Of a DNA stretch of 64,000 nt, positions 2,256 to 22,900 are shown piece by piece. The notes below the pieces were generated by a model that searched no databases, had not been told where the DNA came from, and worked only from the letters and a program-made list of their open reading frames with translations. The DNA lies in sequence record KX397371.1; one strand, given 5' to 3'. The position numbers and the translations under genes were made by a program. The stretch's first letter is position 1. The number at the start of each line of letters is the position of its first letter.

Positions 2256-2264
2256 GGAACGGTC

Positions 2265-3194
2265 ATGACTATTCGTTTAAACTGGCCGTCACAAGCGGCC
2301 AAAGGTCTCACCGCCATTGAAATTTACCGCAAGGTCGGTTGGAATGCCACGCTGGATGTTAACAATCCGGGGACTCCACACGCCACGCTTGCAGGGGACG
2401 CTACCCAGTTTGTCGATGATGTGGCAACCCTGACCAACAACACGACCTACCGTTATTGGGTGGCGGCAGTGAAAGGTACCGAACGACTGATTGGTAATCC
2501 GATTACCCAAGGCTTCTTCCTCGACACTGGACCGGGTCCACAGACGTTGAAGAAAGGGGACTGGGGTTGCGGGTATTTCGGCACCCTCACCAAAGAAGAG
2601 TTCTTCAACACCCCCGAGCTGAAAGTTCTGTTACCTGCTGGTCAAGCGGCACTGTTTGTTTACGACCCGCCGCTGTGGCACAAGTTTATTTTCCGGGGCC
2701 GTATTCTGTTCTTCCCGAACTACACCCACAGTAGCACCGCCTCGTTCGCCACCGCGTATTTGCGTGGGATGGCGTACGGCACGGATGATAACGGACTGTA
2801 TGTCCCCACTGGGCAAACTGCCACTAAACAGGACTGTAAAGTCACCAAGGGCGGCCGTACTTACCGTATCCGTTTACCGTGGGCGTTGCCTTACGATACC
2901 ACCAACGGTGCGTCAGGGGATTACAATAACGGTGAATGGCGCAGTACCATGGCACGTCTGTTCACGCGTGGCGCTAACGACCAGGCACCTGTCGGGCTTG
3001 GCATGTGGGATTCCCTGGCCAACTGGGGTACCAGTAACAGCATGTCCGACCCAGGTGCTACCGCAATGGCACCGATGTACGGTAACGGTTATAACCTGTA
3101 CTGTTACGGCTATAGCCCTGTCAATATCACTATTAACAGTAACCTCAGCTCACCGACCAGCATGCTCTTTGTGTTCGAGCTGATTTTACCGTAA
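2265..3194 (+). CDS. Virion structural protein, type C copy 1
   Basis: N-terminus IRLNW..Q..LTAIEIYR, GPGPQTLKKGDWGCGYFG, terminal FVFELIL. Paralogous to 5640 and 9078. Confidence 0.7.
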   Translation: MTIRLNWPSQAAKGLTAIEIYRKVGWNATLDVNNPGTPHATLAGDATQFVDDVATLTNNTTYRYWVAAVKGTERLIGNPITQGFFLDTGPGPQTLKKGDWGCGYFGTLTKEEFFNTPELKVLLPAGQAALFVYDPPLWHKFIFRGRILFFPNYTHSSTASFATAYLRGMAYGTDDNGLYVPTGQTATKQDCKVTKGGRTYRIRLPWALPYDTTNGASGDYNNGEWRSTMARLFTRGANDQAPVGLGMWDSLANWGTSNSMSDPGATAMAPMYGNGYNLYCYGYSPVNITINSNLSSPTSMLFVFELILP

Positions 3195-3207
3195 CGGAGT
3201 ATCCATC

Positions 3208-4602
3208 ATGGGTCTGTATAGCAAACCCGCACTCGATTTATTGGGGGCGCTCATTAACCGGGACAATCCGGGAGTAAAGACTCAGCTGTCGTCGTCCAAC
3301 ATCCTTGTGCTGGGTGGACCATTCACGACCAGTCTGGGCAACAGTGGCCGCAATACCCGTATCCAACTGAACGGGGTTGTGGGTTCTGGCGTCAACGGAA
3401 AGATGGAGTTTTTCTACGATCGTCTGAACCTGGGAGATTTGTTCAAAAACATCACCATTGTCTTTAACGGTGATAACAAGTCGACGAAACTCAAAGATCT
3501 GCTACCGGCGTTGAATGATCAGTATGGGTTAAACTTGACGGAAGCTGATTTAGCCACGCCTGACACAGCTCTGGATTACGGATATACCGCAACGCCCGTC
3601 ACTTTTACCATGGCAGCGGCGAGTCTGGCGTACCGTGGGAGTTTGACGGCAACGTGGACACGCAAACCGGCCGGGGTTTATCCGAAGTCTGGGCCGGGTA
3701 CAAAAACACTGCTGATGGGGAGTCTGCAAGAAGGCTACTTTGGCGTGGTGTCGAAGGAAGAGATGATGACATCCGGGGAGTTCTACGCGAACTTCTTTGA
3801 TGGCAAAACGGTGAACGGGTCAGGGGTGTTGGTTAACAACACGCTGTTCTGGTTGAAGTTTGCGCTGGATGGAAAGTTTGTCTTTGTCCCGAGCCACAAC
3901 ATGATTTCGAACATCAGCTGGGATACCTTGAACGCGTTTGGTGCGGCGAATGCCGATGCTAAATACCCGATGTTCGTGCAAAAAGACGACGACCAGTTCT
4001 TTTTCCAACTGCGATTACCACGATTCTCCACCACGCTTGAGCTTCCGCCGGATCGTACTGACCCTACTTCGGATGCGAATCGTCTGTTCAACAAGGTGCA
4101 TAAGCAGTCGTACGGTAACGGGGCGTGGGCCGCGTTGACCACCGTGGATATGGCAAACGCCTTTGTCTGGTGGAACAAGCGAAATGATACCTCGGCACCG
4201 TTCCCCGTTTACGTCTCGGCGTTTAACCAAGTCTCGGTAAACAATGCCCCGCCCGCCAGCCCACAAAACTGGCGACCAGTGTTGGAACTGGTCGATGCAG
4301 CTGACTACCTGATGCCGATGCGTAACCTCCAGGCAAAATTGGAAGTACCGGTACGGAACTTTGGGTTTATTCTCACGAGTATCATCGACTCGAGTACGTT
4401 GCAGGCGATGAAAAACATCTCGGCAACACTGGCACGCGGTGTACCGGCACCGGTGTTGTACCGCCCAACGGCGAACATCTTCAAAGCAGCGCAAGACTTC
4501 CGAGCGACGAATCCGGTACGGTCGTTTGCATTCCGGTTCACAGCGACGTACGACAGGCGGACTGATTTAGCCACCACCAATGGCGAACTGAGCGGCTTTT
4601 AA
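3208..4602 (+). CDS. Virion structural protein, type A copy 2
   Basis: MGLY..LI.RDNP..SGRN..FFYDRLNL N-domain, GPGTKTLLMG..GYFG, WRPVLELV, C-terminal DLATTNGELSGF. Confidence 0.7.
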   Translation: MGLYSKPALDLLGALINRDNPGVKTQLSSSNILVLGGPFTTSLGNSGRNTRIQLNGVVGSGVNGKMEFFYDRLNLGDLFKNITIVFNGDNKSTKLKDLLPALNDQYGLNLTEADLATPDTALDYGYTATPVTFTMAAASLAYRGSLTATWTRKPAGVYPKSGPGTKTLLMGSLQEGYFGVVSKEEMMTSGEFYANFFDGKTVNGSGVLVNNTLFWLKFALDGKFVFVPSHNMISNISWDTLNAFGAANADAKYPMFVQKDDDQFFFQLRLPRFSTTLELPPDRTDPTSDANRLFNKVHKQSYGNGAWAALTTVDMANAFVWWNKRNDTSAPFPVYVSAFNQVSVNNAPPASPQNWRPVLELVDAADYLMPMRNLQAKLEVPVRNFGFILTSIIDSSTLQAMKNISATLARGVPAPVLYRPTANIFKAAQDFRATNPVRSFAFRFTATYDRRTDLATTNGELSGF

Positions 4603-4613
4603 AGGATACGATT

Positions 4614-5630
4614 ATGTCATTAAAACTTTCGTGGGCTAACCCGAACACGGCAGCCACCGCGATCCGTATCTATCGTAAAGATACGAACTTTGACTCCAGT
4701 TCCCTTCCCACGCCGCTGGCGGAGATTGGGCCATTGGAAACCAGTTACATCGACACCACGGCGGTCGAAGGCAACAGTTACTACTACGCCATCGGTACCG
4801 TGAGTGCGGTGGACGAGGTCTTTACCGCGACGCAAAAAATCGTTGCCACAGATAACCGTGGTGCGGGCCCAAACGTCTTGCTCGGTGGTGACACCATGCT
4901 TGGGTACTACGGTCAAATGCTGGTTGAAGACTTTGTCAACAACTCCACCATTCTGGCTGCGGCGGCATCGCTTGCGGGGTTGCCAACGGCGTTGGTATCC
5001 CCAAACTGGCACAAGTTTATCCGTAACGGCAAAATCTTGTACTTACCGGACACCAACTTCGGTAATACCGATTACCGCTATCTGTACCAGGCAGGTTTTG
5101 TCCACGGTATTGATGCGAACGGCCCGACAGGCTTCGCGACGACGGGTCTGACACCAACGAAGCAGTTGCGCACTTTTGTGCTGAAAGGCCAGACGTACAA
5201 AATTCGACTGATGCGTGGTTGGAGTGATGGCCCAGAAACGGATATCTCGGCGTACAACGGTGCGGCGGCTAACCACGATAACGTGGCGAATACCAAAGAC
5301 AACGAATTCAACGACTTGGTTTACGCGTTGAATAAGTTCACGCCGTTGAAACAGCGTACCCCGAACTTCCTCAATCTGGAGTGGGATAAGTTTGTCGGTG
5401 CACCAACCACCAACTGGAGCAGCTCAGAAGCCCTGAGTGCCATGATTGCACAGTTCCGCATTGTGACTCAGGAGCGTTGGCCGAACGGCAGTGTGTTATC
5501 CCGCGGTCAGCGTGAAGTGACGTGGGGGCAGTATGCCTCACCACATTCGCGTGCGCATGTGTCGAACATCAGTTCCTCCGGAGTCACGCAAACGCTGATC
5601 TGGTTGCCAGTTATCGAACTCGTGGATTAA
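4614..5630 (+). CDS. Virion structural protein, type B copy 2
   Basis: LSWANPN..IRIYRKD..YYYAI, GAGPNVLLGGD..GYYG, terminal WLPVIELVD. Confidence 0.7.
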   Translation: MSLKLSWANPNTAATAIRIYRKDTNFDSSSLPTPLAEIGPLETSYIDTTAVEGNSYYYAIGTVSAVDEVFTATQKIVATDNRGAGPNVLLGGDTMLGYYGQMLVEDFVNNSTILAAAASLAGLPTALVSPNWHKFIRNGKILYLPDTNFGNTDYRYLYQAGFVHGIDANGPTGFATTGLTPTKQLRTFVLKGQTYKIRLMRGWSDGPETDISAYNGAAANHDNVANTKDNEFNDLVYALNKFTPLKQRTPNFLNLEWDKFVGAPTTNWSSSEALSAMIAQFRIVTQERWPNGSVLSRGQREVTWGQYASPHSRAHVSNISSSGVTQTLIWLPVIELVD

Positions 5631-5639
5631 GAGGTTACA

Positions 5640-6524
5640 ATGGGTATTAAATTAGATTGGGTGGATCAGTCTGCCCAACAGCTCACCGCGATTGAGATTT
5701 ATCGTAGCGCCACGCCAATCTCTACGACGAACCCCGGTACACCGCTTGTGACGTTGCCGGGTAACGCGACGAGTTATGAAGACAGTACCGTCAAAAACAA
5801 ATCGCGTTATTACTACCGTATTGCCGCAGTGAAGGGTAGCGATAAAAGCTTCTCGCCGAATCAGCTTACCGGCTACTTCGCGGAAACCGGACCGGGGCGC
5901 TCTACCCCGATGCGTGGGGACTGGAACGCGGGCTTTATGGATGTACTACCGATGAACGATTTCGTCAGTATGTCATCGTTGTTTACTAAGCTCCCCGGTT
6001 TGGCGAAATACGGCCCGGTCGCAACCACTATCCCTAGCTGGTACAAGATGTGTTATCAAGGAAAGGTGTTGTTTGTGCCTAGTGCGGCAATCACCAATAT
6101 GTCTTGGAACGAACTGTACGCGGAGAAAGCCATCTTTGGGGAAGAAAGCACCGCAACACTGCCTAACGGCACCTTAGCCAGCGGGAAGCTAATGGTGGAA
6201 ATCGGCGGCCTGAACTATATCGTTCGTTGCCCGAAACTCTCACCGGTGGCGTACAGCAACTACGTCACCCTGCAAGAGCAAACGGTGGACAGTGAGTGGC
6301 GTGATACCGTCAGTCGTCTTGCGCAGTTATCGCTTGAGCCACAGGCTGGGGCCAAAACCCGCCTGATGGACTTGACGGGCGCTCCGTTTATCGCAGTAGG
6401 GGGTCATCTGCAAAACGCCACCCAGCACACCGCGATACTGACGGCGGCACCGGGTGCCTTGTCGTACGGGGGTGTTAACAACCGCTATGCTATCGGTTTG
6501 ATTCTCGAACTCGTCATGCCGTAA
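5640..6524 (+). CDS. Virion structural protein, type C copy 2
   Basis: IKLDWVDQS..LTAIEIYRS, GPGRSTPMRGDWNAGF, terminal LILELVMP. Confidence 0.7.
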   Translation: MGIKLDWVDQSAQQLTAIEIYRSATPISTTNPGTPLVTLPGNATSYEDSTVKNKSRYYYRIAAVKGSDKSFSPNQLTGYFAETGPGRSTPMRGDWNAGFMDVLPMNDFVSMSSLFTKLPGLAKYGPVATTIPSWYKMCYQGKVLFVPSAAITNMSWNELYAEKAIFGEESTATLPNGTLASGKLMVEIGGLNYIVRCPKLSPVAYSNYVTLQEQTVDSEWRDTVSRLAQLSLEPQAGAKTRLMDLTGAPFIAVGGHLQNATQHTAILTAAPGALSYGGVNNRYAIGLILELVMP

Positions 6525-6533
6525 GGAGGGCAC

Positions 6534-8066
6534 ATGGGTTTATACGATCGTGATTCGCTGAGTTTACTGTGTCGGCTCATCATGCGCGATAATCCCCAGC
6601 TTGCTGTAGCACTTGATCCGAGTAAGGTGATGGTGCTCAGCGGACCCTTTACATCCGGTTTAGGTAACAGCGGGCGCAATGCCCGCATTACCCTGAACGG
6701 ACGGACCGGCTCAGGGATTGTTGGGAAAAAAGAATTCTTCTACGACCGCATCAACCTCGGTGCCTTATTCAACGGCATTACCGTGGTGTTTATGGCTGCG
6801 GGGAGCGCGAAAACGTACGCCGATTTGTTACCGGCTCTCAATGAGCAGTATGGTATCACATTGCAGGCTTCAGACCTCGCCAACGGTACCACCAAGCTGC
6901 CGCAAGCCTACACCCCTACACAGGTGACACTCACCATTGCCAGCACCTCACCGGCCTTTACAGGTAGCCTGACGGTCACCTGGACCCGAACGCCGGTAGG
7001 CACCTTCCCGGACTCGGGACCGGGCAGCAAGGTGATGTTGATTGGGGATATGGATGAAGGGTACTTCGGTTTAGTGTCCGAAGAGGAGCTGTTCAATGCC
7101 CCTGCATTGCATGCGAAGATAAACGAAGGCAATGCCAGCCCTGTCGGTACGGTTAATGCCATCCCAGCCACCCGCCACTGGTATAAGTTTGCCCGCGACG
7201 GCAAGATTGTTTATCTGGCCAGTTACAACCACATTAACATTCTCTGGCGGGATTTGTATACGCGTGGGGCAGTGTACGAAACCACCGTACCGCTCAACGA
7301 TCATAAAGCCCCTGCCAGTTTGACACGCACGGTGCAGAAGTTAGCAATGCGGAAAGTGGAGAGCGGACGGGAATGGTATTTGTCGCCATGTATGCCACGT
7401 CTGTCCGACCAGACCTCTTGGGACTATAGTGCCATTAACCAAACGCCCGACCCAACGGGTGACGTTGCCCGGCTGTTTATGAAAGTGGCAAATGCGGGAG
7501 GCTACGCTACCGGGGAATGGGACGTTCAGTCCATCGACGCCAACGGTTACTGGCAGTCCACGGCTTCTAAGTCTGACCCAGCAAAAGCCTTCGGCAGCAG
7601 CATGGTCGGTTGGAACCAGGGGATGTACGACATGCTCACCTTCACCGGGGGCTGGCGGCCGATGCTGGAACTGATTGATCCGGCCGTTGTGGGTTTACCA
7701 TTAGAAAACTTCGTCGGTACCCCAGAGGGGGTTCTGCGTAAACCGTTGGTCACCATTAGTCCAGACACCGGCGATGTCCTGTTGCTGCTGTCGGACGTCG
7801 CGTGGGAAATCCAGGGGGCGTTGAAAAAGCCACAGGTCTCAATGCTACCCTCTCCACTGCTGAATGTCAGAGAGATAACGGCGCGCGTAGCAGCAGAAAC
7901 CGATCCGCTTGTGCTGGACTTTGTTACGGCACCTCTCCTGAGTGTACGGCAGACCAGCTGGCAAAACGTATTGCGAGCACCGCAAGCACAACTTGTTGCG
8001 GAATACAAAGCATCGACGGTTGTTAATCTCGCGACTGCGAACGGTGAACTCGACGGCTTTAAATAA
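6534..8066 (+). CDS. Virion structural protein, type A copy 3
   Basis: MGLY..LIMRDNP..SGRN..FFYDRINL, GPGSKVMLIGD..GYFG, WRPMLELID, C-terminal NLATANGELDGFK. Confidence 0.7.
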   Translation: MGLYDRDSLSLLCRLIMRDNPQLAVALDPSKVMVLSGPFTSGLGNSGRNARITLNGRTGSGIVGKKEFFYDRINLGALFNGITVVFMAAGSAKTYADLLPALNEQYGITLQASDLANGTTKLPQAYTPTQVTLTIASTSPAFTGSLTVTWTRTPVGTFPDSGPGSKVMLIGDMDEGYFGLVSEEELFNAPALHAKINEGNASPVGTVNAIPATRHWYKFARDGKIVYLASYNHINILWRDLYTRGAVYETTVPLNDHKAPASLTRTVQKLAMRKVESGREWYLSPCMPRLSDQTSWDYSAINQTPDPTGDVARLFMKVANAGGYATGEWDVQSIDANGYWQSTASKSDPAKAFGSSMVGWNQGMYDMLTFTGGWRPMLELIDPAVVGLPLENFVGTPEGVLRKPLVTISPDTGDVLLLLSDVAWEIQGALKKPQVSMLPSPLLNVREITARVAAETDPLVLDFVTAPLLSVRQTSWQNVLRAPQAQLVAEYKASTVVNLATANGELDGFK

Positions 8067-8078
8067 GAGGATTTGTAA

Positions 8079-9074
8079 ATGGCCTTAAAACTAAAATGGA
8101 AGAACCCGAATGTCGGGGCGACCACCATTGACATTTATCGTGGCGATACGATTAACGTCAGTCTCACCACACCACTGGTGACATTAACGAACGGCGAGCT
8201 GTCGTGGGTAGATACGACGGCATTGTTTGGAAAAACGTATTACTACGTCTGGGCCGTGAATACCGCAAACGACCGCGTAGTCAGTCGCCCACAGAAAATT
8301 GAGGTTAACGACCGTAAAGGCCCTGGACCCAACTTGCTGTTGCATGGTAACGAAGGCTACGGTTTCTTTGGGGTGGTTCCAGCCGCAGATTTTGTTAACA
8401 GCGGCGCTATCTTGGCCGTAGCGAAAAATCTCAGTGGTATCCCGCAAGCCACCGTGTATCCGACTTGGTATAAGTTCATTCGCAAAGGCAAGGTTCTGTT
8501 TGTACCAAACCAAAGCTTTGGCGATACCACTTGGCAAGCGCTGTATAACGCGGGCTTTGTTTACGGGGTTAACAATACGGGACCGGGCGGTGCGGGAACC
8601 GTTAACCAATTAACAACGTTTGAACTGAACGGCGACCTGTTCTTAGTCCGGGCAACAAAAGCGTTTCCTGAGGAAGTGCCGTGGACGGACGGGTTGGGTT
8701 CGTACGACCTTGATACCATGCCTGTGATGGAAAATGTGTACGCCGAATACGAAGACCTGCTGTATCCGATGGTCGCACACTCCCCGCTGCGTAAACGGAT
8801 GGTAACGGTTGGAGATGAAAACCCCAACAACGTCCTACCGCCCCTGTATAACACCGTCTCTCGTACTGTGATTGGGGTCTGCTGCCAGGACTACAACAAC
8901 AACTTAGTGCTCCAGCGCGGGGTTGGCTATAACTCTTACGGCCAATCCACACACAACCGCAGCACGCTCCGTGCCTGCAACCGTCGTACCAAGACCGATA
9001 CCTGTGTATGGTGGCCGGTCGTGGAATACGTGGGGCGCGTAGGTGAAGTAGACTTGACAAAATTAGGAGTGTAA
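8079..9074 (+). CDS. Virion structural protein, type B copy 3
   Basis: LKWKNPN..IDIYRGD..YYYVW, GPGPNLLLHGN..GFFG, terminal WWPVVEYV. Confidence 0.7.
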   Translation: MALKLKWKNPNVGATTIDIYRGDTINVSLTTPLVTLTNGELSWVDTTALFGKTYYYVWAVNTANDRVVSRPQKIEVNDRKGPGPNLLLHGNEGYGFFGVVPAADFVNSGAILAVAKNLSGIPQATVYPTWYKFIRKGKVLFVPNQSFGDTTWQALYNAGFVYGVNNTGPGGAGTVNQLTTFELNGDLFLVRATKAFPEEVPWTDGLGSYDLDTMPVMENVYAEYEDLLYPMVAHSPLRKRMVTVGDENPNNVLPPLYNTVSRTVIGVCCQDYNNNLVLQRGVGYNSYGQSTHNRSTLRACNRRTKTDTCVWWPVVEYVGRVGEVDLTKLGV

Positions 9075-9077
9075 GGG

Positions 9078-9980
9078 ATGGGAATCACGATTAACTGGGA
9101 TGACCAGTCCGACCAAGCGTTAGATGCCATCGAGGTGTATCGTTCAACATCACCGATTGACATTAACAATCCTGGTACCCCGATTGCGACACTGGCAGGA
9201 ACCGCCCGCTCGTACGAAGATACTGCGGTGAAAGTGGGGAACACGTATTACTACTGTGTGGCGGTAAAGAAGGGAGAGAACCGTTCTTTCGGTGCGGTGC
9301 AGACCCAAGGCTATTATGCTAACTTAGGGCCTGGACCACAGCGGTTGTTACGCGGAGATTGGGTACGCGGCTACTTCGGTGAAATGTCTCCAGCTGACTG
9401 GGTGACCCCGGCGGATGTGGCTAACAAAATCAAGGATGTGCTCAAGTCCACCACGGGGATCACCTTCACAACCAGCACCGGCTCTACCTGGTTCAAGTTT
9501 ATCTATAAAGGGAAGATTCTCTTTATTCCGAACCTGAACCTGTTGAACAGCAGCAACTGGACAACCGGCTACAATGCTGGGTTTATTTTCGGCACTGACG
9601 ATTTTGGAAACTCACCAACGGGTGTCCCCGGTGCCGTTAACCAACGTTGTGTGATTGAAATCGCTGGGCTTCAGTACATCGCTCGTGCGATTCGTCTGTC
9701 AGAAAAACCGACTACCCAATACCTGACCGACCAGCTGGATTTTAATGACAGCGAATGGAAGTCTACCTATGCACGACTGCGGACTGACGGGTTAGCCATT
9801 ACCGACCCAACAGTACAACCGCGAGTAAACGACTTGGGCAATCTTAACAGCACAGGCAGCGCGCATATGGCCGATGCTAACAACTCCGCCGCGGTTATTG
9901 GCAGTGCTCCTGAAACCTTGGGCAAAACCCCGAAAACTTCGGGTATTGGCTGGATGGTTGTACTCGAACTGTTGCAATAA
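9078..9980 (+). CDS. Virion structural protein, type C copy 3
   Basis: ITINWDDQS..LDAIEVYRS, GPGPQRLLRGDW..GYFG, terminal VVLELLQ. Confidence 0.7.
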   Translation: MGITINWDDQSDQALDAIEVYRSTSPIDINNPGTPIATLAGTARSYEDTAVKVGNTYYYCVAVKKGENRSFGAVQTQGYYANLGPGPQRLLRGDWVRGYFGEMSPADWVTPADVANKIKDVLKSTTGITFTTSTGSTWFKFIYKGKILFIPNLNLLNSSNWTTGYNAGFIFGTDDFGNSPTGVPGAVNQRCVIEIAGLQYIARAIRLSEKPTTQYLTDQLDFNDSEWKSTYARLRTDGLAITDPTVQPRVNDLGNLNSTGSAHMADANNSAAVIGSAPETLGKTPKTSGIGWMVVLELLQ

Positions 9981-13260: not shown

Positions 13261-13301
13261 AAGAAAAAAAAGAAAAGCGACCCACCCCCGAAGGAGTGGG
13301 T
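13261..13301 (-). terminator. Intrinsic terminator (minus strand)
   Basis: Minus strand acccactcc-ttcg-ggggtgggt followed by cgcttttcttttttttctt. Separates the rSAM operon from GH108. Confidence 0.8.
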
Positions 13302-13306: not shown

Positions 13307-13963
13307 TTAGGCTACACCATTATCCGCAGCAAGCTGCTTAATCGCGGTGAAGTCTTTTTGTTCCGTGAGGATACGGATGCGTTGTTTCAGCACGGACATG
13401 ACCATGTGCAGGTCATTGTCACGCGTGATAATTTCCGCATAGAGGGCTTTAACGTCCTCCACCGTCCACGGCTCGATAGGCTCGTTGTTCAGCGTCATCC
13501 AGTACATCGGGTCAACCCCGGACTGCATGTAGCTTTGCATCGATTCGCGCGATTTCTCGTCAGCTTGGAACGTCTTGTCGCGGAAGGTAATCGGTGCAAA
13601 CCGTTCCGCGTTATACTTGTCGTTCAGTTTCGGATAAATCGCATTGACTTCCTGATAGAGGTAGTTCTCCGTCGAGGTCAGCGCCGTACGTACTTGGTCT
13701 AAATCAATCTCCAGTACGTCAGCGATGAAGTCTTTGGTTTTCTTCATCAGGAATTCAATTTCAACCGGTGACAGGTCAAAGCCTTTGAGTTTCTCGCGGG
13801 CTTTCTTGTCACTCATACCGTTAATCAGATGGTAATGCAGTAGCAAGCAGAACCCGATACGGTTTTCCATCTGGTCTTGGTATTCTTCTACGTAGTTACC
13901 GTAGCGGTCGATACGCGTGCCCCGTTCGAAATAGCGGGCTTTTATTTCGTCGTTACTAAGCAT
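13307..13963 (-). CDS. DUF4376-like protein (tail-fibre assembly associated)
   Basis: C-terminal ITFRDKTFQADEKSRESM..WMTLNNEPI..DVKALYAEI..LKQRI matches my recollection of the DUF4376 pattern found beside tail-fibre genes. Confidence 0.6.
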   Translation of the reverse strand: MLSNDEIKARYFERGTRIDRYGNYVEEYQDQMENRIGFCLLLHYHLINGMSDKKAREKLKGFDLSPVEIEFLMKKTKDFIADVLEIDLDQVRTALTSTENYLYQEVNAIYPKLNDKYNAERFAPITFRDKTFQADEKSRESMQSYMQSGVDPMYWMTLNNEPIEPWTVEDVKALYAEIITRDNDLHMVMSVLKQRIRILTEQKDFTAIKQLAADNGVA

Positions 13964-14499
13964 CCGGATTCTCCTGCAATCCCAAGGTCAACCAGCAGAC
14001 CGAAGTCAATGAACTGGAAATCGTTTTCCAACTCTTCGCCCCAGAGCAGTTTGGCCTCTTCTGCTTCATCACCCATCTCTTCCAGCGTCTTACGCGCCAC
14101 TTCGAATTCGTGGTAGAACGCATCAGTTAGGTGAGTACCGCGTAATGCACGCACGGTCACACCAGGGAAGTTCAGGGCCAGTCCCACAACGTTGGTTGGG
14201 TCTGCATCACCGGTAGAACGGCGCAGTACCTGCAACTTGTGTTTTGGGAACGCCACCACACGTTTTTCGAAACCGGGATTACGTTTCTCGATTTCGACAA
14301 CGGACTGGTGATCGTCTTCCACGCCCTGTAAAGGTAGGATGACATTCAGGCCATAACGGTTCAACAGACGAATGGTGTCATCGTTGAAATCTTCACCCGG
14401 TACGATCGCATGGATGTTGTACAGCTTGTGTTTGCGAAGGAACGCTTCGACAAGGTGAACGTTACGCCGAGTAAAATTGTGAATCAGCAATGACTTCAT
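13942..14499 (-). CDS. Hypothetical protein in rSAM operon
   Basis: 185-aa ORF with SD ggag, overlapping both neighbours. No motif recognised. Confidence 0.65.
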   Translation of the reverse strand: MKSLLIHNFTRRNVHLVEAFLRKHKLYNIHAIVPGEDFNDDTIRLLNRYGLNVILPLQGVEDDHQSVVEIEKRNPGFEKRVVAFPKHKLQVLRRSTGDADPTNVVGLALNFPGVTVRALRGTHLTDAFYHEFEVARKTLEEMGDEAEEAKLLWGEELENDFQFIDFGLLVDLGIAGESGCLVTTK

Positions 14500-15808
14500 T
14501 CGAGACTCCGAGTTCTAATTTAAGTTTATCCGCTTTCATGCGATCACGCACGCAGCTCGCACAGTAGCACAAGGTCTTATCGTGCAGGTCTGCGACATTC
14601 GTGGTACCGGTTTTCTGATACCAGTATTCGGACACCAACAGTTTCGCGGTTGTCCAACCACACTGGCGACGCTCAGCATGGTACTCTTTACGCGCTTCCA
14701 GCTCACCATCGCCGTTCTCGTAAGAAGCAGCTGCACAGCTACCGCACGAGTGTTTCATCGGGCAGCCTAAGCAGGTAGACGGGTAGTTGGTATACTGCGT
14801 CTGGATTTCGTTCAGGAGTTTGTGACCGTCAATGTTCACAATCTCACGCCCGCGCAGTTCTGCTACCGCTGAACGGGTAGTTACGGTTGACATGAAACGG
14901 TTACAGCCGTAGATCTTACGGTCGAAGCCGAGACAGGTCATGTGGGTCAGCGTACCGCAGTAAGGACGTACGCGGTCTGGGTGCAGACGGGTTGCTTCAT
15001 CGTCCAGCAACTTCTGACGCCAGTCCGGGTCCCATGTCGCCATGAAATCCAACCCATCAGGAATGATGTGGGTCAGGATATTACGTGGTGACTTGTGGTA
15101 GCCGTTGTCGACCCAGTAATCGATAACGTCAATCATCTGGTTTGCAATACCCAGAGCCATATCACGCGACAGAATGTCTTCGTACGTGACGTTACCGGAG
15201 ATGGTACCACCGCCCGTTTCTTTAATCAGGTGAATCATGCTCTCGCCGTAACGAGGCAGGGTCTCACCGGTAAAGGTGGCTTTGATACCGAGTTCTGCAA
15301 TACCGACAGATTTCAGGTATTGGTAGCCGCGCATCGCCTGCTCGTACGAGCCTTCACGCGAAGTGGTGAAGATACGATAGCGGTCGTGTACTTCTGGCAG
15401 ACCATCGATGGACACACCAATCGACAGACGGTCTTTCCAGCGTTCAATGATTTCTTTGCTGATAGGACGGTCGAACAAGGTGCCGTTGGTAGAAATAGAG
15501 AATACGTACTGGCGGTTGTCGCGCGCCGCTAACTCTTCGGCTGTCTCAAAGACGGCTTTCAGAATCTTCGGCTGCATAAACGGCTCACCCCCGATGATGT
15601 CGATAATGATTTCGGCATCTTCGATGTGACGGTCGCGGTCAAAACACGCATGAATAAAATCGACAGCGTCATCCACTTTGTTGTTGCGCGGATACTTACG
15701 TTCGTAGCAATACGAACAGTCGAGATTACAAGACAGGTTAGTTACGACCTGATACGTGAGTGTGGGGCGCTGTTTACGCGTCTGCGATGAAGATCGTTCT
15801 TCACTCAT
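14462..15808 (-). CDS. Radical SAM/SPASM peptide maturase
   Basis: CNLDCSYC (CxxxCxxC), GGEP, STNGT, SIDG..HD..R. SPASM cysteines YCG..GCNRF..CLGCPMKHSCGSC..QC, plus an extra CYCASC near the C-terminus. Confidence 0.92.
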   Translation of the reverse strand: MSEERSSSQTRKQRPTLTYQVVTNLSCNLDCSYCYERKYPRNNKVDDAVDFIHACFDRDRHIEDAEIIIDIIGGEPFMQPKILKAVFETAEELAARDNRQYVFSISTNGTLFDRPISKEIIERWKDRLSIGVSIDGLPEVHDRYRIFTTSREGSYEQAMRGYQYLKSVGIAELGIKATFTGETLPRYGESMIHLIKETGGGTISGNVTYEDILSRDMALGIANQMIDVIDYWVDNGYHKSPRNILTHIIPDGLDFMATWDPDWRQKLLDDEATRLHPDRVRPYCGTLTHMTCLGFDRKIYGCNRFMSTVTTRSAVAELRGREIVNIDGHKLLNEIQTQYTNYPSTCLGCPMKHSCGSCAAASYENGDGELEARKEYHAERRQCGWTTAKLLVSEYWYQKTGTTNVADLHDKTLCYCASCVRDRMKADKLKLELGVSNEVIADSQFYSA

Positions 15809-16698
15809 TTGATTACCTCATTGCGATGTTTGCGAGCGTGGATCGTGCGATTGATGTAACGGTAGGCTTCTTGCCCAATGACTTTCGCCAGCATGTTACA
15901 ACCGCTATCGATTTCCATCTCGACATCCATCGTGTAGCCGATAGACGCATCGGAGTCCAGACGAACCAGACCGCTGCACGCGTTGCACGACTGCTCAAAG
16001 AACTTGCTGATGGAGAACCCAGTTGAGCCATTGTTCATGACATTCAGGCGTTCAATCTGGTCTTCCATTTTGTTGTAGCCGAACATGAAGTTCATCACCA
16101 AATCTTGGTTCAGAGGTTTCTTCATGCGGTTGTCCAACAGCAGCGTCATGTCTTTGAAGCCGTAGTGGTGGAGTGCGCGGTGTAAGTCCAGCAGGTCAGT
16201 GTGCCAATATTTATCAGCCAACTGCTCACGAGTCACCACGGCCCACGTATGGACGTTGTTCAGCGCAGCCATCACTTCGAAGGCTTCGAATGCACCATCT
16301 TCAACGACACGCCAGAGCGGACGTTCGCTCTTTTTGTATCCATCGAACGACACACAGATACGGTTAAACTGTTGCAGCATCGGGAGATGTTCCAGACGCA
16401 TTTTCAGACCGTTCGTGTACAGCTCGTGAGTGAGATGCGGGTATCGGGCTTTGACTTCGGCCAGCAATGGCTCAATCTTGCGGGTTGCCATTAACGGCTC
16501 ACCACCCGTCCAGTTCATCCCTTGTAAAGTCGGGTACTTCTCCAGTTGTTCAAACAGCGCTTCACGCTGAATTTCCCGACCAACATCTTTTGTGTCCATG
16601 TAATACGCTCCGCCGCAGAAACTACAATCCAAATTACACTTGGACGTCGTCACTATCGACAGCTCGGTAGGGGGACGTATTTGTGGTGCATCGGTCAT
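15805..16698 (-). CDS. Second radical SAM enzyme (short, possibly Twitch-like C-terminus)
   Basis: CNLDCSFC, TGGEPL, YTNG, VSFDG and C-terminal CNAC..GC. ATGA overlap with the SPASM gene. Confidence 0.88.
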   Translation of the reverse strand: MTDAPQIRPPTELSIVTTSKCNLDCSFCGGAYYMDTKDVGREIQREALFEQLEKYPTLQGMNWTGGEPLMATRKIEPLLAEVKARYPHLTHELYTNGLKMRLEHLPMLQQFNRICVSFDGYKKSERPLWRVVEDGAFEAFEVMAALNNVHTWAVVTREQLADKYWHTDLLDLHRALHHYGFKDMTLLLDNRMKKPLNQDLVMNFMFGYNKMEDQIERLNVMNNGSTGFSISKFFEQSCNACSGLVRLDSDASIGYTMDVEMEIDSGCNMLAKVIGQEAYRYINRTIHARKHRNEVIK

Positions 16699-16716
16699 TG
16701 CAGATTGCTCCAGTTT

Positions 16717-17595
16717 TTAATAGATCGCGAAAAGGGGGTCGTCCTCAAACTTCGCGCCCACATCCAGAAGGAAATCGGAGTGGTAGGCATCGAGTATTTG
16801 ATTCAGAACAGCCTGACGGTCGTTAATCCGTTTAAGATCATCGAGTGTCACGCTTCGCGACTTGATGTTTGAAACTGCCTTTTCTTCGTCAGCTGTTAAG
16901 GAAACCTTCGACAGAAGGAAACTTACCAGCTTGCTCAGGTCAGCCTCGGTACCCGGTGCTTCACCGTAACGCAATTGAACCAAGAACTGCATCCACGGTT
17001 TGCGGATACGGCGACTGATTTCATGCGGGTCGGTAATCGCTTCGAACTGCCCATCTACCGCATTCCAGCGAAACTTGTAGCTGTACGCCAGCAAGTCAGC
17101 CAAGCAATGGATACCGAGCGTTTCATAACCTAAGATGTGATGGTATTTTTCCACACCTTTATATTCTTCCGTGCCGGTCGGTACTAAGGTGTACCAGAAC
17201 GGGTTGGATGACGGATAGTCCCAGCTCCATTCGCGACGAACCATGGGAATGACATCCAAATCCGCAAACGGCGTGAAGATCATTTCCAAATCCATCGAGT
17301 GGTTCAGGACTGCATCAGTAAAGAAATACTTACCGTCAATCAGTCGGCCACTGGCGTTCAGCTCGCTTTCATTAAACTTCACATGCTGAACAGTGTGCTT
17401 ACCGATGGAGTAGGTATTCTCTTCGGTGTACTGCTTACGTGTAATATCCCGCCCACGTACCTTAGGCCATTCGCCTGGCAGCATCGAGATAAGGCGTACT
17501 TCGTCAGCGATGTGTGCTTTCACACTGTCGTACGACGAAATGTGTAACGGGAAATTTTGCGTCGTGCGGTACGCCAAATGGAGGTCGTTCTTCAT
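16717..17595 (-). CDS. Hypothetical protein between precursor peptides and rSAMs
   Basis: 292-aa ORF with SD aagga and 18-nt spacers on both sides. No motif recognised. Confidence 0.7.
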   Translation of the reverse strand: MKNDLHLAYRTTQNFPLHISSYDSVKAHIADEVRLISMLPGEWPKVRGRDITRKQYTEENTYSIGKHTVQHVKFNESELNASGRLIDGKYFFTDAVLNHSMDLEMIFTPFADLDVIPMVRREWSWDYPSSNPFWYTLVPTGTEEYKGVEKYHHILGYETLGIHCLADLLAYSYKFRWNAVDGQFEAITDPHEISRRIRKPWMQFLVQLRYGEAPGTEADLSKLVSFLLSKVSLTADEEKAVSNIKSRSVTLDDLKRINDRQAVLNQILDAYHSDFLLDVGAKFEDDPLFAIY

Positions 17596-17613
17596 GGTTT
17601 CTTTATCCTTACT

Positions 17614-17823
17614 TTATCGGTTACCCGCGCCGTAACTGCACCCGCCACTGCACGACCAGCTACAGCTACCGTTGCAGTTATAATGCGAGAGTGGAAGCCC
17701 AGCAAGGTTGTTGGTCGAACTGACCGTGCCGCGTGTGGCGATATAGTTATTGGCCTGTGCGGTCGTGATGTAGCCTTCGACGTTCTGCACCCGATCGCGA
17801 ATGTTTTTCAATGAGATTGCCAT
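17614..17823 (-). CDS. Cys-rich precursor peptide P3 (4 Cys, CxxxC)
   Basis: Leader MAISLKNIRDRVQNVE, core CNGSCSWSCSGGC, SD gagga. Confidence 0.8.
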   Translation of the reverse strand: MAISLKNIRDRVQNVEGYITTAQANNYIATRGTVSSTNNLAGLPLSHYNCNGSCSWSCSGGCSYGAGNR

Positions 17824-17844
17824 AGGTCCTCACTCGATAGATTT

Positions 17845-18237
17845 CTATCGACTGCCTGAACAGCCAGAGCATCCCGTACAACTTGAACTACAGGAACCGG
17901 AACAGTTACCGGAGCATGTACCCGAACAACCGGAGCACCCACCCGAACATGAACCAGAACATCCTGAGCACCCACTGGTACACCCAGCAGTACAGCTCGA
18001 CGAACATGAGGAACCGCAGCCCCCTGATGCCGAACCGGAACAGCCACCTGAACAGCTAGAGCAACCCCAGCTACAGGTTCCGCCGCAATCGTAATGAACA
18101 CGTCCTTGGCCGCCGAATAAGTCGACGTTATTGGTTGCCTTACCACGAATGTAGGTTTGTACCCCACCTTCCGTTTTTAAGGAGTTCGCTTCGATCACTG
18201 CAATGCGATCCGCGAGGTTTCGTAAGTTGATAGCCAT
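17845..18237 (-). CDS. Cys-rich precursor peptide P2 (20 Cys, CxxxC repeat)
   Basis: Leader MAINLRNLADRIAVIE, Gly/Ser/Cys core starting DCGGTCSWGC, SD ggag. Confidence 0.85.
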   Translation of the reverse strand: MAINLRNLADRIAVIEANSLKTEGGVQTYIRGKATNNVDLFGGQGRVHYDCGGTCSWGCSSCSGGCSGSASGGCGSSCSSSCTAGCTSGCSGCSGSCSGGCSGCSGTCSGNCSGSCSSSCTGCSGCSGSR

Positions 18238-18246
18238 TGTTTCTCC

Positions 18247-18636
18247 CTACTGTGGACCAGAGCAACCAGAGCAACCGGTGCAGCTGGAAGAACACGACCC
18301 GGCGCAACCACCGCCACACTTACCACTGCACGAAGACGCACAGGTACCTGAGCAACCTGAACAACCCGAACACCCACCGCCGCAGTTAGAAGAACAGCTA
18401 CCCACGCACGTAGAAGTACAAGTCCCTGCGCAGCTGGTACAGCTTGCAGAACACCCGTTAGAACACGACCAGCTACAACTACCGCCACAATCCAGACGGG
18501 AGGGAGACCACCCACTGAACGAGTCCGCAGCGTTGTAAGCTTTCGATGCTACCTGCCCGTCTACACGAGGCCCGGTAGCATAGTTTGCTTCCACATTGTT
18601 AACGCGGTCGCGTATGTTTTTCATTGAAATCGCCAT
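18247..18636 (-). CDS. Cys-rich precursor peptide P1 (21 Cys, CxxxC repeat)
   Basis: Leader MAISMKNIRDRVNNVE, core starting DCGGSCSWSC, SD aagga. Confidence 0.85.
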   Translation of the reverse strand: MAISMKNIRDRVNNVEANYATGPRVDGQVASKAYNAADSFSGWSPSRLDCGGSCSWSCSNGCSASCTSCAGTCTSTCVGSCSSNCGGGCSGCSGCSGTCASSCSGKCGGGCAGSCSSSCTGCSGCSGPQ

Positions 18637-18652
18637 ACGTTTCCTTTGTCAA

Positions 18653-18690
18653 TAAAAAAATGAGGACGCTGCCATAATGACAGCACCTCA
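18653..18690 (-). terminator. Intrinsic terminator between the 401-aa fibre gene and P1
   Basis: Minus strand tgaggtgctgtca-tta-tggcagcgtcctca (GU pairs, one bulge) followed by ttttttta. Confidence 0.7.
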
Positions 18691-18701
18691 TGTATTAAGT
18701 G

Positions 18702-19901
18702 TTATCGTGAACCCGCCTCGGCCTGTACGTCGTCGCGAGAAGTCAGGCTGCTGTTGACGTGTACTGCCGCCTGAACCACACCGCCGTACTGCTTGTGGAG
18801 ATAGTTCGGGTGTGGGTTATCTGCGTTAACGTGGTTCTGGAGATTCTGCGACAGGGTGTTAATGGAGTTCTGCAATCCAGCAACTTGCTGTTTCAGTGCA
18901 TTCAGCTGACCAGAGAGATCCTGAATCTGCTGCTGCGTATCGGAACCGGCGGATTCCAAATCACTGATGCGCTGCTTGAGCCCATTGATGACTTGGTTCT
19001 GGTCATTGATCATCTTCTGGAGTTGTAACACCAGAGAGTTCAGGTCGGCCTGTTGTAACGCCGCCTTTTGGTAGTTCAATGCCACCGAATTCAGTTGGTC
19101 ATTCCACGAACCGAGTGCACTGACCACCGCATCGATACGCGCACCGAGTGCTGTGTCCGCTGCTTTCAAATTACCGATGTCAGCGAGGACAGCGTTAATG
19201 GCAGTCTGAACCGTTTGAATCAGCGCGCGAATTTCGGTTTCAGTGAGACCGTTCGCCTGATGAATATCCAGTGCGTGAACATTACCTTTGGCATCGATGT
19301 GCGATTGTAGCGCCGCCATCATCTGGGTTTGCATGTCAGACATGGCTGCCAGAATCTGCTGGAGCTGAACTTCGTTACCGGAGTTAATCGCATCGGTCAT
19401 CAACGCGAGTTGCGTAATGATGTATTCGAAACCAAACAGGTCGCCGAGGTCTTTAAAGGCCGGAGCCGCTGCAAAGGTATCCGGGACATTACGCAGGTCA
19501 GCGAAGTCAACTTTGCGGTCTTCAAGGTTGGCATCAGCCAACGCCTGTTTAATCGCAGAGATAACCGCCGACTGTGGACCACCGACGACCTGTGCAAGAC
19601 AGACGATATCGGTTGGGATAGCCGGGTTAGTGACGACCACACCCATACAGATTTCGCGGTTCTTAGCAAGCTTCATGTACGCCGGATGGATGTAAATCAG
19701 CTCGTAGTCGGTACCGCGTTTATAAATGGTGTTGGGTTGATTGGCAGGCCGCATACGGAACGTGTCCGCATAGAACGGCCCTGCTGGGAAAGCGAACGCA
19801 CGGTTGACCTTCCCCCCACCTAACACAACCGGGACATTGACCGCGTTACTGGACGCAGCCCCTGTCAGGTCAAGTGGGTATTGAAATAGAATATCTGGCA
19901 T
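18702..19901 (-). CDS. Short tail-fibre-like virion protein with long coiled coil
   Basis: ATG at 19901 with SD gggag. N-domain YPLDLTG..GPFY..RGTDYEL is shared with the three large fibre genes. Heptad-rich Q/L region with RISDLE, then HVNADNPHPNY fibre motif. Confidence 0.7.
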   Translation of the reverse strand: MPDILFQYPLDLTGAASSNAVNVPVVLGGGKVNRAFAFPAGPFYADTFRMRPANQPNTIYKRGTDYELIYIHPAYMKLAKNREICMGVVVTNPAIPTDIVCLAQVVGGPQSAVISAIKQALADANLEDRKVDFADLRNVPDTFAAAPAFKDLGDLFGFEYIITQLALMTDAINSGNEVQLQQILAAMSDMQTQMMAALQSHIDAKGNVHALDIHQANGLTETEIRALIQTVQTAINAVLADIGNLKAADTALGARIDAVVSALGSWNDQLNSVALNYQKAALQQADLNSLVLQLQKMINDQNQVINGLKQRISDLESAGSDTQQQIQDLSGQLNALKQQVAGLQNSINTLSQNLQNHVNADNPHPNYLHKQYGGVVQAAVHVNSSLTSRDDVQAEAGSR

Positions 19902-19948
19902 GGCCAAACTCCCTTAGTGAGACGTCCTTGTCTCGACGTGTTAGATGG

Positions 19949-22900
19949 TTACGGCAACTTAGGCATAAGATTGACCGTCAGTTTTGACGGGGTGACCGTT
20001 CCGCCGTAATAGTTGACCCCGTTGCCGATGTACAACGCGTTGTCGGCAATAAGCATGGGAATCGGTTGGCGGAAGATGACATCTCCATGAACAATCGGGA
20101 AATAATCATCGATGGAAACACCTGCTGGCATGGCGACTTTATAAACATCAAGTACGCCACCAGTGATGCGCCCCGCTGCGCCCTGTACGTTCGTTGTGGC
20201 ACGAATGGCCACGGTAGCAGCATCGGAGATATAGAACACCGTCGCTGTGCCGTTATCCACGTTAGAGACACTAAACGCAGCGAACGCGGTGGCTTGACCC
20301 CCGGTGATACCATTAAACACGAATGTGTTTTTGACCCCCACCTCGGCAGCAAGTGTGGCCTCAGCCAGCGTAGAAGAAAACGTTGCAGAAACATCGAGGT
20401 TGGCGTTGGTACATCCGATGGTGCCGGAGCCCAAAGAGTAACCGCTTGTCAATTTGATTTTCACCGTCGGGGTCGACGGGGTAATCTCCACAATCATTTT
20501 CCACGCAATCGAGATGACAGCCGACATCCCCGGAATACCCACCAAATACCCATTATCTACATCAGAAGCCTGACCAAAGTTGGCACCCTTCATCGTGAAC
20601 TTCTTGTAGTCTTTAGGTAAGGTGCTCGCCACCACATCCCGCAGTAACTCGATGGGAACCTTGTGGTTTTGTGACGCGAAGACCGGGCCGATTTGCGACA
20701 CATCCAGATACCCATCGCCGGTAGCCGCCGGAGCAGAAAGGGGTTGCTTACGCAATAGCCCCAGTCGAGAAAGGCGCGCTTCACTGTCCACATTCACATC
20801 GTGGCTGTAGACCGTGTCGGTGTGTTCCGTCAACTGTTTCAATTCACCCAAGCGTTTCACTTTCGTGAACTCAGACGACAAGATACGCTGACTGTCGGTG
20901 ACTACCGTCCCGATAAACAACCGGGTATCTGTATCGGGCATTTTCTGCGTCAACAGCTGGTATTCCGGTTTGCCGTTCACCACCGCAGCATGCATGTAGA
21001 ACGTACGGTTTTGGTACGCACCGGGGAACAACGTTTTGATGTTCCCGTTATACGCATCCAACGTGTAATAGTCGGAGCCAAAGCGTAAGCTCTCAGACTC
21101 GGTGATGTACAGCTCCCACCCTTCTGCGGTTTTTACCCCAGCAACGATTGCAACATTCCCCGCAGGGGTGTAGTTTGTCACCCCTGCCGCAACAAAGTCG
21201 TTCGGTGGTGCGCTTGGGCCTGCGAAATAAGAAGGTGAAATCACCTGCCCGTTTGACCGCAGCATTCGCTCCCCAACAAACGAAAGGATGGTAGCATAGT
21301 TGTAAAACGTGCTGCCGTGCACCCCCGCCTTCGTCGCCGACAGCTTACCTCCGTTCAAACTGAAAATCAGCTCAAGGTGGTACGCCGCGGATGACCCCAC
21401 GACCTGTCGAATCATGAAGTTCGGCAAGTGCATGATGCCCGTTCCGTCACCTTTCTCGTAGAAGATTGGTTGGCCCATTCTGCTGCTGTGCCCAGAATAG
21501 TTGGTATTCTGAATGAGTTGCAGGTTGCTGTACGTCGCGATGTTGGTGTATACAACGTCAGCTGTGGTCGTGACCAGCTGAACAACCCCGTTCACGACGC
21601 TCGGGTAGATTTGGAACGTAACATTCCCTAACCGCTTATTGCCGTTATAGAGTGCGTAGTACGACATCTGTGCAATCCAAATCGGATTGGCATCAAGGGG
21701 TCGAATCGCCCACACGGAAAAGAGGAGGTTAATCGGGTTGGCAATGCTGTCCGCCACCTCACCTGCCGGTGCTGCCGCTTTTAAGGCCGCCGTTATCTTG
21801 TTCCATGTGTCGGAGGACAACGTAAGGGTATCGGCTTTTGGTACCGCACCCACGGCCTGGTACCGCTTCACACCGGGACCGTTCCAATACGCGCCGTTTA
21901 ACTTACCCGACTGGAGCGTGGATGTCGCACACCACGTCATGTCTGCCAAAGCGTAGTAATCGTCAACCGGGAAATTGCGGCGCACGTTACTCGGGCCTGC
22001 GCCCAAGTACGCGGGACCGTATGTTGTGTTTGGGTCTACCTCGACATACACCGCGCTGTTGGCGTTGGCGGGACTAAACAGATACGCATTATTGCCCAGA
22101 TACACCGGATGGGATTGACCGACAGAATACACCGAGCCAATACCGCCCGTGAACTGCCAGTTCGCCAGAGAGGTGTAACCGCTTTTGTGGTCTCCTGCGA
22201 TAAAGTCGTAGAAGTCCGCGTCCATTGTCGAGTGTGCTAACCCGTTGGGGAGGGTGTCCTGAGACTGATCGTAAATAGACCATGCGCGTTGGCCAACCCC
22301 TTGGAACACCCGCATGCGGTTATCAGCATTGCCGTACGGGAACCGAACTTTCCAGCCTGCCTCTTTGAGCTTTGTCCCAGTGGCGAGATACACATCGTCC
22401 GCATCGATTTTGAATGGGAAGATGTCTGCATTATCCAGCGAGACCGTCAACGTATCCATGTCAATCTGGAACGAGGTCGCCCAAGTGAAACGGCCATACG
22501 AGTCATCAGGGCTCAACAATAACAGGGTGCTCAAAATACCTACCCTGGTCATGTTCTCGCGCTGCGCTACCGCATACGTCGCGATGTTGTGTGCGATGTT
22601 GCGCAGGTTACCCCAGCGTACTTTACCGGCCTCGGTCACATAGGTGGTGCCCTGTGTCGCAGGGTCGGTCGCATCGGTGTCTGTGTTAGCGCGCAGCAAC
22701 ACTGAGATACCGTTGACGCTGTTCCCCCCTTTGAGAGCAGCAGGGGTGTAAACCATCTTGTCCCCACTGACTGACCCTACTAACGCATAGACACTGTACT
22801 GGGTATTGGTCAATTCCAGATGAAGAATGTAGACTTTCCCTTTATACACGATGGTTTGTTCGCGTGTCTGATCGCCGAGATAGCCGCTGACCGTGCCGTT

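Follow-up and report, generated by a model that had tools for sequence, protein, structure and literature searches.

Three small Cys-rich proteins encoded beside radical SAM enzymes are most likely miniature tail-fibre subunits of SPN3US-like jumbo phages

Introduction

Cross-linking of Cys-rich substrates by radical S-adenosylmethionine (SAM) enzymes is known for peptides, namely ribosomally made peptides that are modified post-translationally (RiPPs). Only recently was such cross-linking shown for one protein, which is archaeal and of unknown role (PMC13692751). Here we describe a locus in a 64,000-nt stretch of sequence record KX397371.1 (hereafter the window), whose positions 13900-20000 are 100% identical to Erwinia phage vB_EamM_Parshik (KX397371, Machinavirus, 241 kb). 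Three small minus-strand genes, designated P1, P2 and P3, lie there at 17614-18636, and their products are most likely paralogous mini tail-fibre proteins of SPN3US-like jumbo phages that serve as subunits of the tail-fibre tip. The gene content, homology, synteny and conservation patterns described below are established, whereas the arm chemistry, virion presence and oligomeric state are predictions. Our searches of the literature for phage, radical SAM, Cys-rich and tail-fibre topics turned up no account of the P1-P3/radical SAM system, and none of a phage fibre with so small a size, a Cys-rich distal part or radical SAM maturases.

Results

Three paralogous Cys-rich genes

Open reading frame (ORF) translation defined the three genes and their parts as follows.

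18247-18636, minus strand: P1, putative Cys-rich mini-fibre protein, 129 aa; missing from the GenBank KX397371 annotation
18586-18636, minus strand: P1 helix, aa 1-17
18490-18585, minus strand: P1 paralogue-specific middle, aa 18-49
18247-18489, minus strand: P1 CXXX arm, 21 Cys
17845-18237, minus strand: P2 (gp177), putative Cys-rich mini-fibre protein, 130 aa
18187-18237, minus strand: P2 helix
18088-18186, minus strand: P2 middle
17845-18087, minus strand: P2 CXXX arm, 20 Cys
17614-17823, minus strand: P3 (gp176), short paralogue, 69 aa
17773-17823, minus strand: P3 helix
17677-17772, minus strand: P3 middle
17614-17676, minus strand: P3 short arm, 4 Cys

The three products appear to share one architecture, in which a predicted N-terminal amphipathic helix of about two heptads is followed by a paralogue-specific segment of ~30 residues ending in the fibre-type motif N-x-x-D-x-L-x-G-x5-Y, and an invariant C-x3-C-S-W knot precedes the CXXX-repeat arm in each. 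On the translated minus-strand ORFs the first Cys stands at residue 50 in P1, 51 in P2 and 50 in P3, as an initial annotation of this DNA had stated. The arms, ~80 residues long in P1 and P2 and ~20 in P3, consist almost purely of Cys, Ser, Gly and Thr, with a Cys every 3-4 residues (21, 20 and 4 in P1, P2 and P3, respectively). The C-terminal stretch that the same annotation had noticed in both P1 and P2 is the 15-mer GSCSSSCTGCSGCSG, followed by PQ in P1 and SR in P2.

These ORFs are real genes, as P1, P2 and P3 all match phrog_6085 (E values of 8.4e-49, 1.4e-49 and 3.7e-29, respectively), each is preceded by a Shine-Dalgarno-like sequence, and the triad is kept in 11 lineages. In GenBank, a plus-strand low-complexity 'PEQPEQ' ORF, gp178 (18203-18538, +), erroneously stands where the minus-strand P1 lies, while the SPN3US records hold only a wrong-frame ORF, gp166, over P2 and leave P1 and P3 without any annotation; similar strand or frame misannotation was found in most relatives (for instance L002, 6598-7627). 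Because the genes are rarely annotated, word-based protein searches with the "leader", i.e. the residues preceding the first Cys, returned one protein for P1 and two for P2. By tblastn, the P2 leader matched 62 jumbo-phage records (Erwinia, Salmonella, Escherichia, Cronobacter and Proteus), and 19 P3 homologues were found. Searches of solved structures with P2 and a profile alignment gave insignificant matches only (cytochrome c', 0.012; NOWA, 1.2).

Each of the 11 lineages examined has a single P1-type, a single P2-type and a single short P3-type gene, and a nine-gene arrangement was common to eight GenBank relatives and to metagenomic jumbo-phage contigs, where the contig extends far enough. 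The Cys count of P1 is 21 in all 11 lineages, and the arms of P1 and P2 measure 78-84 residues in 10 of the 11 despite their low-complexity repeats (Wellington P2, 92 residues). P3 keeps just two Cys of the motif in four lineages, and Wellington P3 has a further upstream Cys at residue 34. In three P1/P2-type sequences from metagenomic contigs (P0033, P0040 and P0043), unrelated sequence replaces the arm partway, apparently through frameshifts or assembly errors.

The pre-cysteine segment in longer relatives

Searching 1.84 billion proteins with a profile that covers the leader and the first Cys motif recovered the phage peptides and, in addition, proteins of 185-258 aa (P0042, P0047, P0048, P0049 and P0051), in which the "leader" segment is internal (approximately residues 92-160) and lies behind an N-domain. 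This internal segment is made up of helix, N-x-x-D-x-L-x-G-x5-Y motif and C-x3-C-S-W knot, with a CXXX arm coming next; the longer relatives match phrog_6085 from profile position 5-7 on (E values of 1e-15 to 2e-19). The N-domains of P0051 and P0042 match the tail-fibre family phrog_5073 (2.8e-6 and 3.6e-5, respectively), and those of the other three gave weak tail matches or none.

Of the six longer-relative loci, four have a contig that extends downstream (GCRwPS3I, L012, L016 and L022), and in these a radical SAM gene comes next. At L012, the Cys-rich gene is followed by a radical SAM gene and by homologues of gp175 (6e-7) and gp173 (7e-66), two genes located downstream of P3 in Parshik. 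At L022, a 33-kb IMG/VR contig, a gene for a 223-aa Cys-rich fibre-like protein is followed by radical SAM, gp175-like and second radical SAM genes (181-3514), and this module sits directly upstream of the sheath gene in a P2-like phage tail cluster (3633-9702: sheath, tube FII, tape measure, GpU and GpD). The gp175-type proteins of L012 and L022 match each other with an E value of 2.5e-64. A substrate, a radical SAM enzyme, a gp175-type protein and a second radical SAM enzyme form a mobile four-part module of tail-fibre regions. A DNA-pattern search for related loci gave 11 loci, six of which were without a module homologue.

In two metagenomic jumbo phages the P3 orthologue is extended beyond the Cys knot by non-Cys sequence, ~140 mainly polar residues in P0023 (L018, 9001-9633) and ~80 residues in P0029 (L019, 9001-9444); no family was assigned to these added C-terminal parts. 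Such P3 variants behave like fibre proteins in which the N-terminal anchor is conserved and the distal end varies. Taken together, the internal position of the segment in the longer relatives, the P3 extensions and the module synteny show that the ~50 pre-cysteine residues derive from a fibre shaft.

Operon partners and radical SAM enzymes

The genes follow each other on the minus strand in the order gp180, gp179, P1, P2, P3, gp175, gp174, gp173, gp172 and gp171, with tiny gaps or overlaps, gp180 being a fibre-type protein of 1663 aa. The features flanking P1-P3 are listed below.

18702-19907, minus strand: gp179, coiled-coil fibre protein, 401 aa; phrog_2163, E 8e-111; directly upstream of P1
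18665-18687, minus strand: terminator-like hairpin and T-run between gp179 and P1
16717-17595, minus strand: gp175, conserved partner, 292 aa; phrog_8030; core part of the module
15805-16698, minus strand: gp174, radical SAM enzyme, 297 aa; PF04055, E 2e-11; phrog_1802
14462-15808, minus strand: gp173, radical SAM enzyme with SPASM-type C-terminal region, 448 aa; PF04055, 4.8e-15
13942-14499, minus strand: gp172, conserved protein, 185 aa; phrog_7988; 38-nt overlap with gp173; syntenic in all loci
13307-13963, minus strand: gp171, DUF4376 protein, 218 aa; PF14301, E 6.5e-10; phrog_1807 tail fibre, 2e-4 (weak); last of the block
13280-13301, minus strand: second terminator-like hairpin and T-run, after gp171

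The two hairpins bracket the eight-gene block from P1 to gp171 as a possible separate transcription unit, in which P1-P3, with a leader-core layout, share one operon with the gp174 and gp173 enzymes.

gp174 carries CX3CX2C at residues 21/25/28 and three C-terminal Cys, and is without a full SPASM domain. gp173 has the Cys set of a radical SAM/SPASM enzyme, i.e. CX3CX2C and 7-8 C-terminal Cys (two auxiliary clusters), and its Cys 27/31/34 and 284/292/302/346/349/355/358/383 are kept in 8 of 8 homologues; the Pfam SPASM model gave no match in gp173. In NCBIfam it matches best the CXXX-repeat maturase family TIGR04115 (1.5e-36), followed by PapB (3.6e-36), neither match reaching its cut-off, and its best PDB match is CteB (5wgg, 1.9e-12), with CteB residues 104-276 aligned to gp173 residues 24-197. 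As the alignment starts only at CteB residue 104, gp173 is without the N-terminal RiPP recognition element (RRE) of CteB. The AlphaFold2 (AF2) model of gp175 (predicted local distance difference test score (pLDDT) 85.6; predicted template modelling score 0.80) shows a beta-sheet domain and, after it, a helical bundle, and no fold neighbour was found in PDB or BFVD except its own orthologue, so that neither a peptidase nor an RRE role can be assigned to it. In Pfam, NCBIfam and PHROGs, no peptidase or transporter family was detected among gp171-gp175, and no PqqD/RRE family was matched by gp175 or gp172.

In two IMG/VR jumbo-phage contigs, L026 (5652-6563) and L031 (1137-2048), a third radical SAM gene, which is gp174-like (E ~1e-99), is located between P1 and P2.

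The tail-fibre setting and gp179

The P1-P3 genes lie within a tail-fibre block, between the virion fibres gp180/gp179 on one side and the DUF4376 protein on the other, and are homologous to proteins with tail-fibre domains. In SPN3US, the gp179 homologue gp167 was detected in virions (85 spectra, 70% coverage), as were the large fibres gp168-170 (PMC5694885 supplement). The last ~40 residues of gp179 are highly conserved across all lineages, and gp179 is a candidate attachment partner of P1-P3. Elsewhere in the window, at 51-9980 (+), eight consecutive genes are annotated as virion structural proteins (Parshik gp157-164) and resemble a paralogue array.

Cleaved leader or retained segment

The position of P1-P3 beside radical SAM/SPASM enzymes whose nearest families are peptide maturases also fits a classical RiPP, in which residues 1-49 would be a leader that is recognised and then cut, and the modified peptides would be freed at lysis, for example as antimicrobial or metal-binding products. 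The leader-core layout, the N-terminal helix common to the three substrates and a weak resemblance to the CXXX-repeat target TIGR04114 speak for it: against the TIGR04114 cut-off of 20 bits, P1 scored 8.7 and P2 11.5 bits, the distant relative P0047 scored 20.2 bits, and P3 gave no match at E up to 0.1 in the NCBIfam scan (the relaxed scan excluded P3). Moreover, the neighbouring enzymes and gp165 of SPN3US are absent from virions.

Nevertheless, neither a peptidase nor a transporter was detected in the operon, and an RRE was neither found in gp173 nor recognisable in gp175. The helix is the least conserved part of the proteins by identity (18-35% between distant orthologues, compared with 50-62% for the middle and 55-76% for the P1/P2 arms), whereas a recognition sequence is expected to show the opposite. 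The supposed leader is an internal fibre-shaft segment in the longer relatives, P3 is down to two motif Cys in four lineages while other P3 variants gain a C-terminal domain, and two unrelated phage types carry the genes in their tail-fibre blocks. We therefore regard a classical RiPP as improbable, because of the fibre homology, the missing processing genes and the P3 variants, and the view of the initial annotation that the segment is retained rather than removed as a leader is supported. Processing by the prohead protease was considered separately and rejected: the SPN3US sites are of A-x-E type, and none was seen by eye in residues 1-49 of P1-P3.

The R-h-x-x-h-E motif and the N-terminal helix

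For the N-terminal helices, the initial annotation had put forward the coiled-coil motif R-h-x-x-h-E as a determinant of trimerisation. In its strict form, the motif is Arg(g)-h(a)-x-x-h(d)-Glu(e), where h(a) is I/L/V/M and h(d) is L/I/V (PMC3653964). Four copies are relevant here.

18589-18606, minus strand: RVNNVE of P1
18190-18207, minus strand: RIAVIE of P2
17776-17793, minus strand: RVQNVE of P3
18954-18971, minus strand: RISDLE of gp179

The translations confirmed these hexamers at residues 11-16 of P1-P3 and RISDLE at residues 313-318 of the 401-aa fibre, as well as the hydrophobic residues claimed at positions 5/8/12/15 (M-I-V-V in P1, L-L-I-I in P2 and L-I-V-V in P3). In all three helices the hexamer obeys the strict definition and stands in the g-a-b-c-d-e register, and most core residues are beta-branched. 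The background of the motif was 8-13 copies in the 21,095 residues of the window's long ORFs, i.e. 0.4-0.6 per 1000 aa, which makes a single copy in a 401-aa fibre unremarkable by itself; exactly one copy was found in 10 of 11 gp179 orthologues, at three positions (~253, 311-313 and 339). Likewise, the P1-P3 copies stand at the same position of paralogues and therefore count as one inherited feature, not as three independent matches.

The structure for which this motif was invoked is a parallel 1:1:1 heterotrimeric coiled coil of the P1-P3 helices with two long and one short Cys-rich arm. Besides the strict, in-register motif in all three window helices, it is favoured by the presence of the triad in 11 of 11 lineages, by the matching arm lengths of P1 and P2, and by the Derbicus-type phages, in which Arg11 is confined to P1 and Glu16 to P2 and P3, so that an Arg-Glu bridge would be possible solely between chains. 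However, Arg and Glu are treated as strictly conserved in R-h-x-x-h-E, and the motif occurs also in dimers and antiparallel trimers (PMC3653964). Such conservation was not found among the homologues: of the 33 helices from the 11 lineages, 15 carry the full motif (13 by the strict residue sets), and the Parshik type alone carries it in P1, P2 and P3 alike. Position 16 is Asp in P2 of the Seoulvirus and Erskinevirus types, and in the three Derbicus-type phages, with R..S/Q in P1 and Q..E in P2 and P3, no paralogue has the full motif. Among the first 27 helices, Arg11 was found in P1, P2 and P3 in 9/9, 6/9 and 4/9, and Glu16 in 5/9, 5/9 and 9/9, respectively. Compared with the known R-h-x-x-h-E coiled coils (coronin-1, ccbeta and GCN4p-M3; PMC3653964), P1-P3 of Parshik and gp179 share the exact motif in register, but Arg and Glu of P1-P3 are not conserved across orthologues and the helix is only about two heptads long. 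The claim that R-h-x-x-h-E is a selected determinant is not supported, and the motif cannot serve as the conserved basis of a heterotrimer: a textbook trimer motif can occur in one genome and yet not be a conserved feature.

The hydrophobic a/d positions behave differently from Arg and Glu, as they were kept in 27 of 27 helices scored and, by inspection, in six later ones. Such an a/d pattern, kept while identity drifts, looks like the behaviour of a packing helix. It is limited to residues 1-15, with Gly or Pro following at 17-25, and AF2 placed a helix at residues 5-16 with low confidence (pLDDT ~50).

Likeness among the paralogues within a phage

The helices of different paralogues were more alike within a phage (identity 0.45) than between phages (0.36), a difference reached by 0 of 5000 permutations, and the C-terminal 18 residues of P1 and P2 were likewise more alike within (0.70) than between phages (0.54; p 0.002), both tests being uncorrected for phage relatedness. 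Gene conversion was considered as the source of the helix identity between P1 and P3 and of the shared P1/P2 15-mer, and was ruled out by differing codons: 8 of the 14 residues that are identical in the P1 and P3 helices are encoded by different codons, the 15-mer is identical at 32 of 45 nt, and no two of the three genes share an exact run longer than 14 nt. The same amino acids encoded by different codons indicate that selection, and not gene conversion, keeps P1-P3 alike. The arms use mixed synonymous codons (TGC/TGT and several Ser and Gly codons), and this mixture, with shared runs of at most 14 nt, would limit recombination between the three genes.

A heterotrimer would fit the within-phage likeness, and so, equally well, would three proteins that are modified by one enzyme set or that bind to one docking site. 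Three homotrimers, or a docking of each peptide on gp179, would likewise explain the same data equally well as the heterotrimer. Furthermore, the relatives with a single gene (L012, L022 and L016) must be homo-oligomers if they are oligomeric. Given the uncorrected permutation statistics, the short helix and the unconserved motif, we consider a motif-specified heterotrimer doubtful.

Discussion

The reading that we favour, with moderate confidence, is that P1-P3 are miniature tail-fibre subunits, of which the N-terminal 50 residues are retained for assembly or attachment and the CXXX arms are modified by gp173 and gp174 together with gp175, most likely by thioether cross-linking. The first 50 residues would remain in the mature protein and mediate oligomerisation or attachment, probably at the gp179 coiled-coil fibre or next to it; they may in addition serve as a handle recognised by the maturases. 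From family resemblance, gp174 and the SPASM-type gp173 are predicted to modify the arms post-translationally with gp175; the likeliest chemistry would be thioether cross-links from Cys, of the ranthionine or sactionine type, and cross-linked arms could form a rigid, protease-resistant distal part.

Several observations weigh against this proposal. An N-terminal helix common to three substrates of one enzyme set also looks like a recognition leader. P1-P3 fell below the cut-off of every curated family in the Pfam and NCBIfam scans, and gp173 reached neither the TIGR04115 cut-off (126.6 of 350 bits) nor that of PapB. The AF2 monomer of P3 (18-sequence alignment) showed only two short helices at a low pLDDT of 48. 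The Asp/Glu acceptors of PapB-type motifs are missing from the arms, which makes the cross-link chemistry of the arms a guess. Finally, the SPN3US virion proteome lists gp167-170 and none of gp161-166 (PMC5694885 supplement), the absent gp161 being the homologue of gp171. The true P1-P3 ORFs are unannotated in the SPN3US GenBank records and were thus probably missing from the proteome search database, and tryptic sites are almost absent from the arms; the absence of P1-P3 from the proteome is therefore uninformative, and it is not supportive either.

The arms might also be no enzyme substrates at all but metal-binding or disulfide-bonded Cys-rich domains, metallothionein-like or minicollagen/NOWA-like, with the radical SAM genes serving otherwise. 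The CX3C period does resemble the NOWA Cys-rich domain, although the profile match is insignificant (E 1.2), and the thiols could oxidise outside the cell. This is very improbable, as the Cys-rich gene co-occurs with the radical SAM/gp175/radical SAM genes in jumbo phages, in a P2-like element and in short metagenomic contigs, L026 and L031 carry their extra radical SAM gene just between P1 and P2, and the nearest radical SAM families all act on Cys-rich peptides.

The closest characterised analogue of the phage module is CrpA/CrpC of Methanococcus voltae, in which a radical SAM-SPASM enzyme installs ranthionine thioethers on a Cys-rich protein and two substrate paralogues share 47 N-terminal residues (PMC13692751). 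Both systems have Cys-rich C-terminal repeats in a protein-sized substrate encoded beside a radical SAM-SPASM enzyme and paralogous substrates with a common N-terminal part of ~47 residues, and in both the binding may be domain-to-domain and not only leader-to-RRE. They differ in that CrpC belongs to TIGR04463 and has an RRE, whereas gp173 scored 57 bits against the TIGR04463 cut-off of 525 and has no N-terminal RRE; in that Crp motifs contain Asp/Gln acceptors, whereas the phage arms hold almost only Cys, Ser, Gly and Thr; and in the tail-fibre block setting, the second radical SAM enzyme and gp175 of the phage module. The CXXX-repeat system (TIGR04114/TIGR04115) resembles the phage module in the best family match of gp173 and the CXXX period of the arms, but P1, P2 and gp173 are not members by the curated thresholds; our literature search found no paper on the chemistry of this family. 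PapB/freyrasin and CteB/SCIFF represent the second-best NCBIfam family and the best solved structure for gp173 and have the SPASM-type Cys set, but the phage side is below the cut-offs and without CX3D/E acceptor motifs or an RRE, and the PapB and CteB substrates are 45-residue peptides whereas those of the phage are fibre-like proteins. With phage tail fibres (e.g. phrog_5073), P1-P3 share the gene position, homologues with tail-fibre N-domains, the shaft segment of helix and N-x-x-D-x-L-x-G-x5-Y, and the varying C-terminal ends of P3; unlike usual tail fibres, they are very small (69-130 aa) and have a Cys-rich low-complexity distal part and dedicated radical SAM maturases.

A more far-reaching version, in which the tail-fibre tip of jumbo phages is a 1:1:1 heterotrimer of three tiny proteins with radical SAM-stapled arms, so that RiPP-type chemistry would occur in a virus particle and through a module shared with P2-like phages, is rather unlikely as a whole. 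As P1-P3 are missing or misannotated in most GenBank records examined, existing virion proteomes were probably unable to detect them. If the substrates are indeed tail-fibre parts, this would be the first case known to us of such chemistry building a virion component, and a tail-fibre role would give these radical SAM enzymes a concrete biological purpose.

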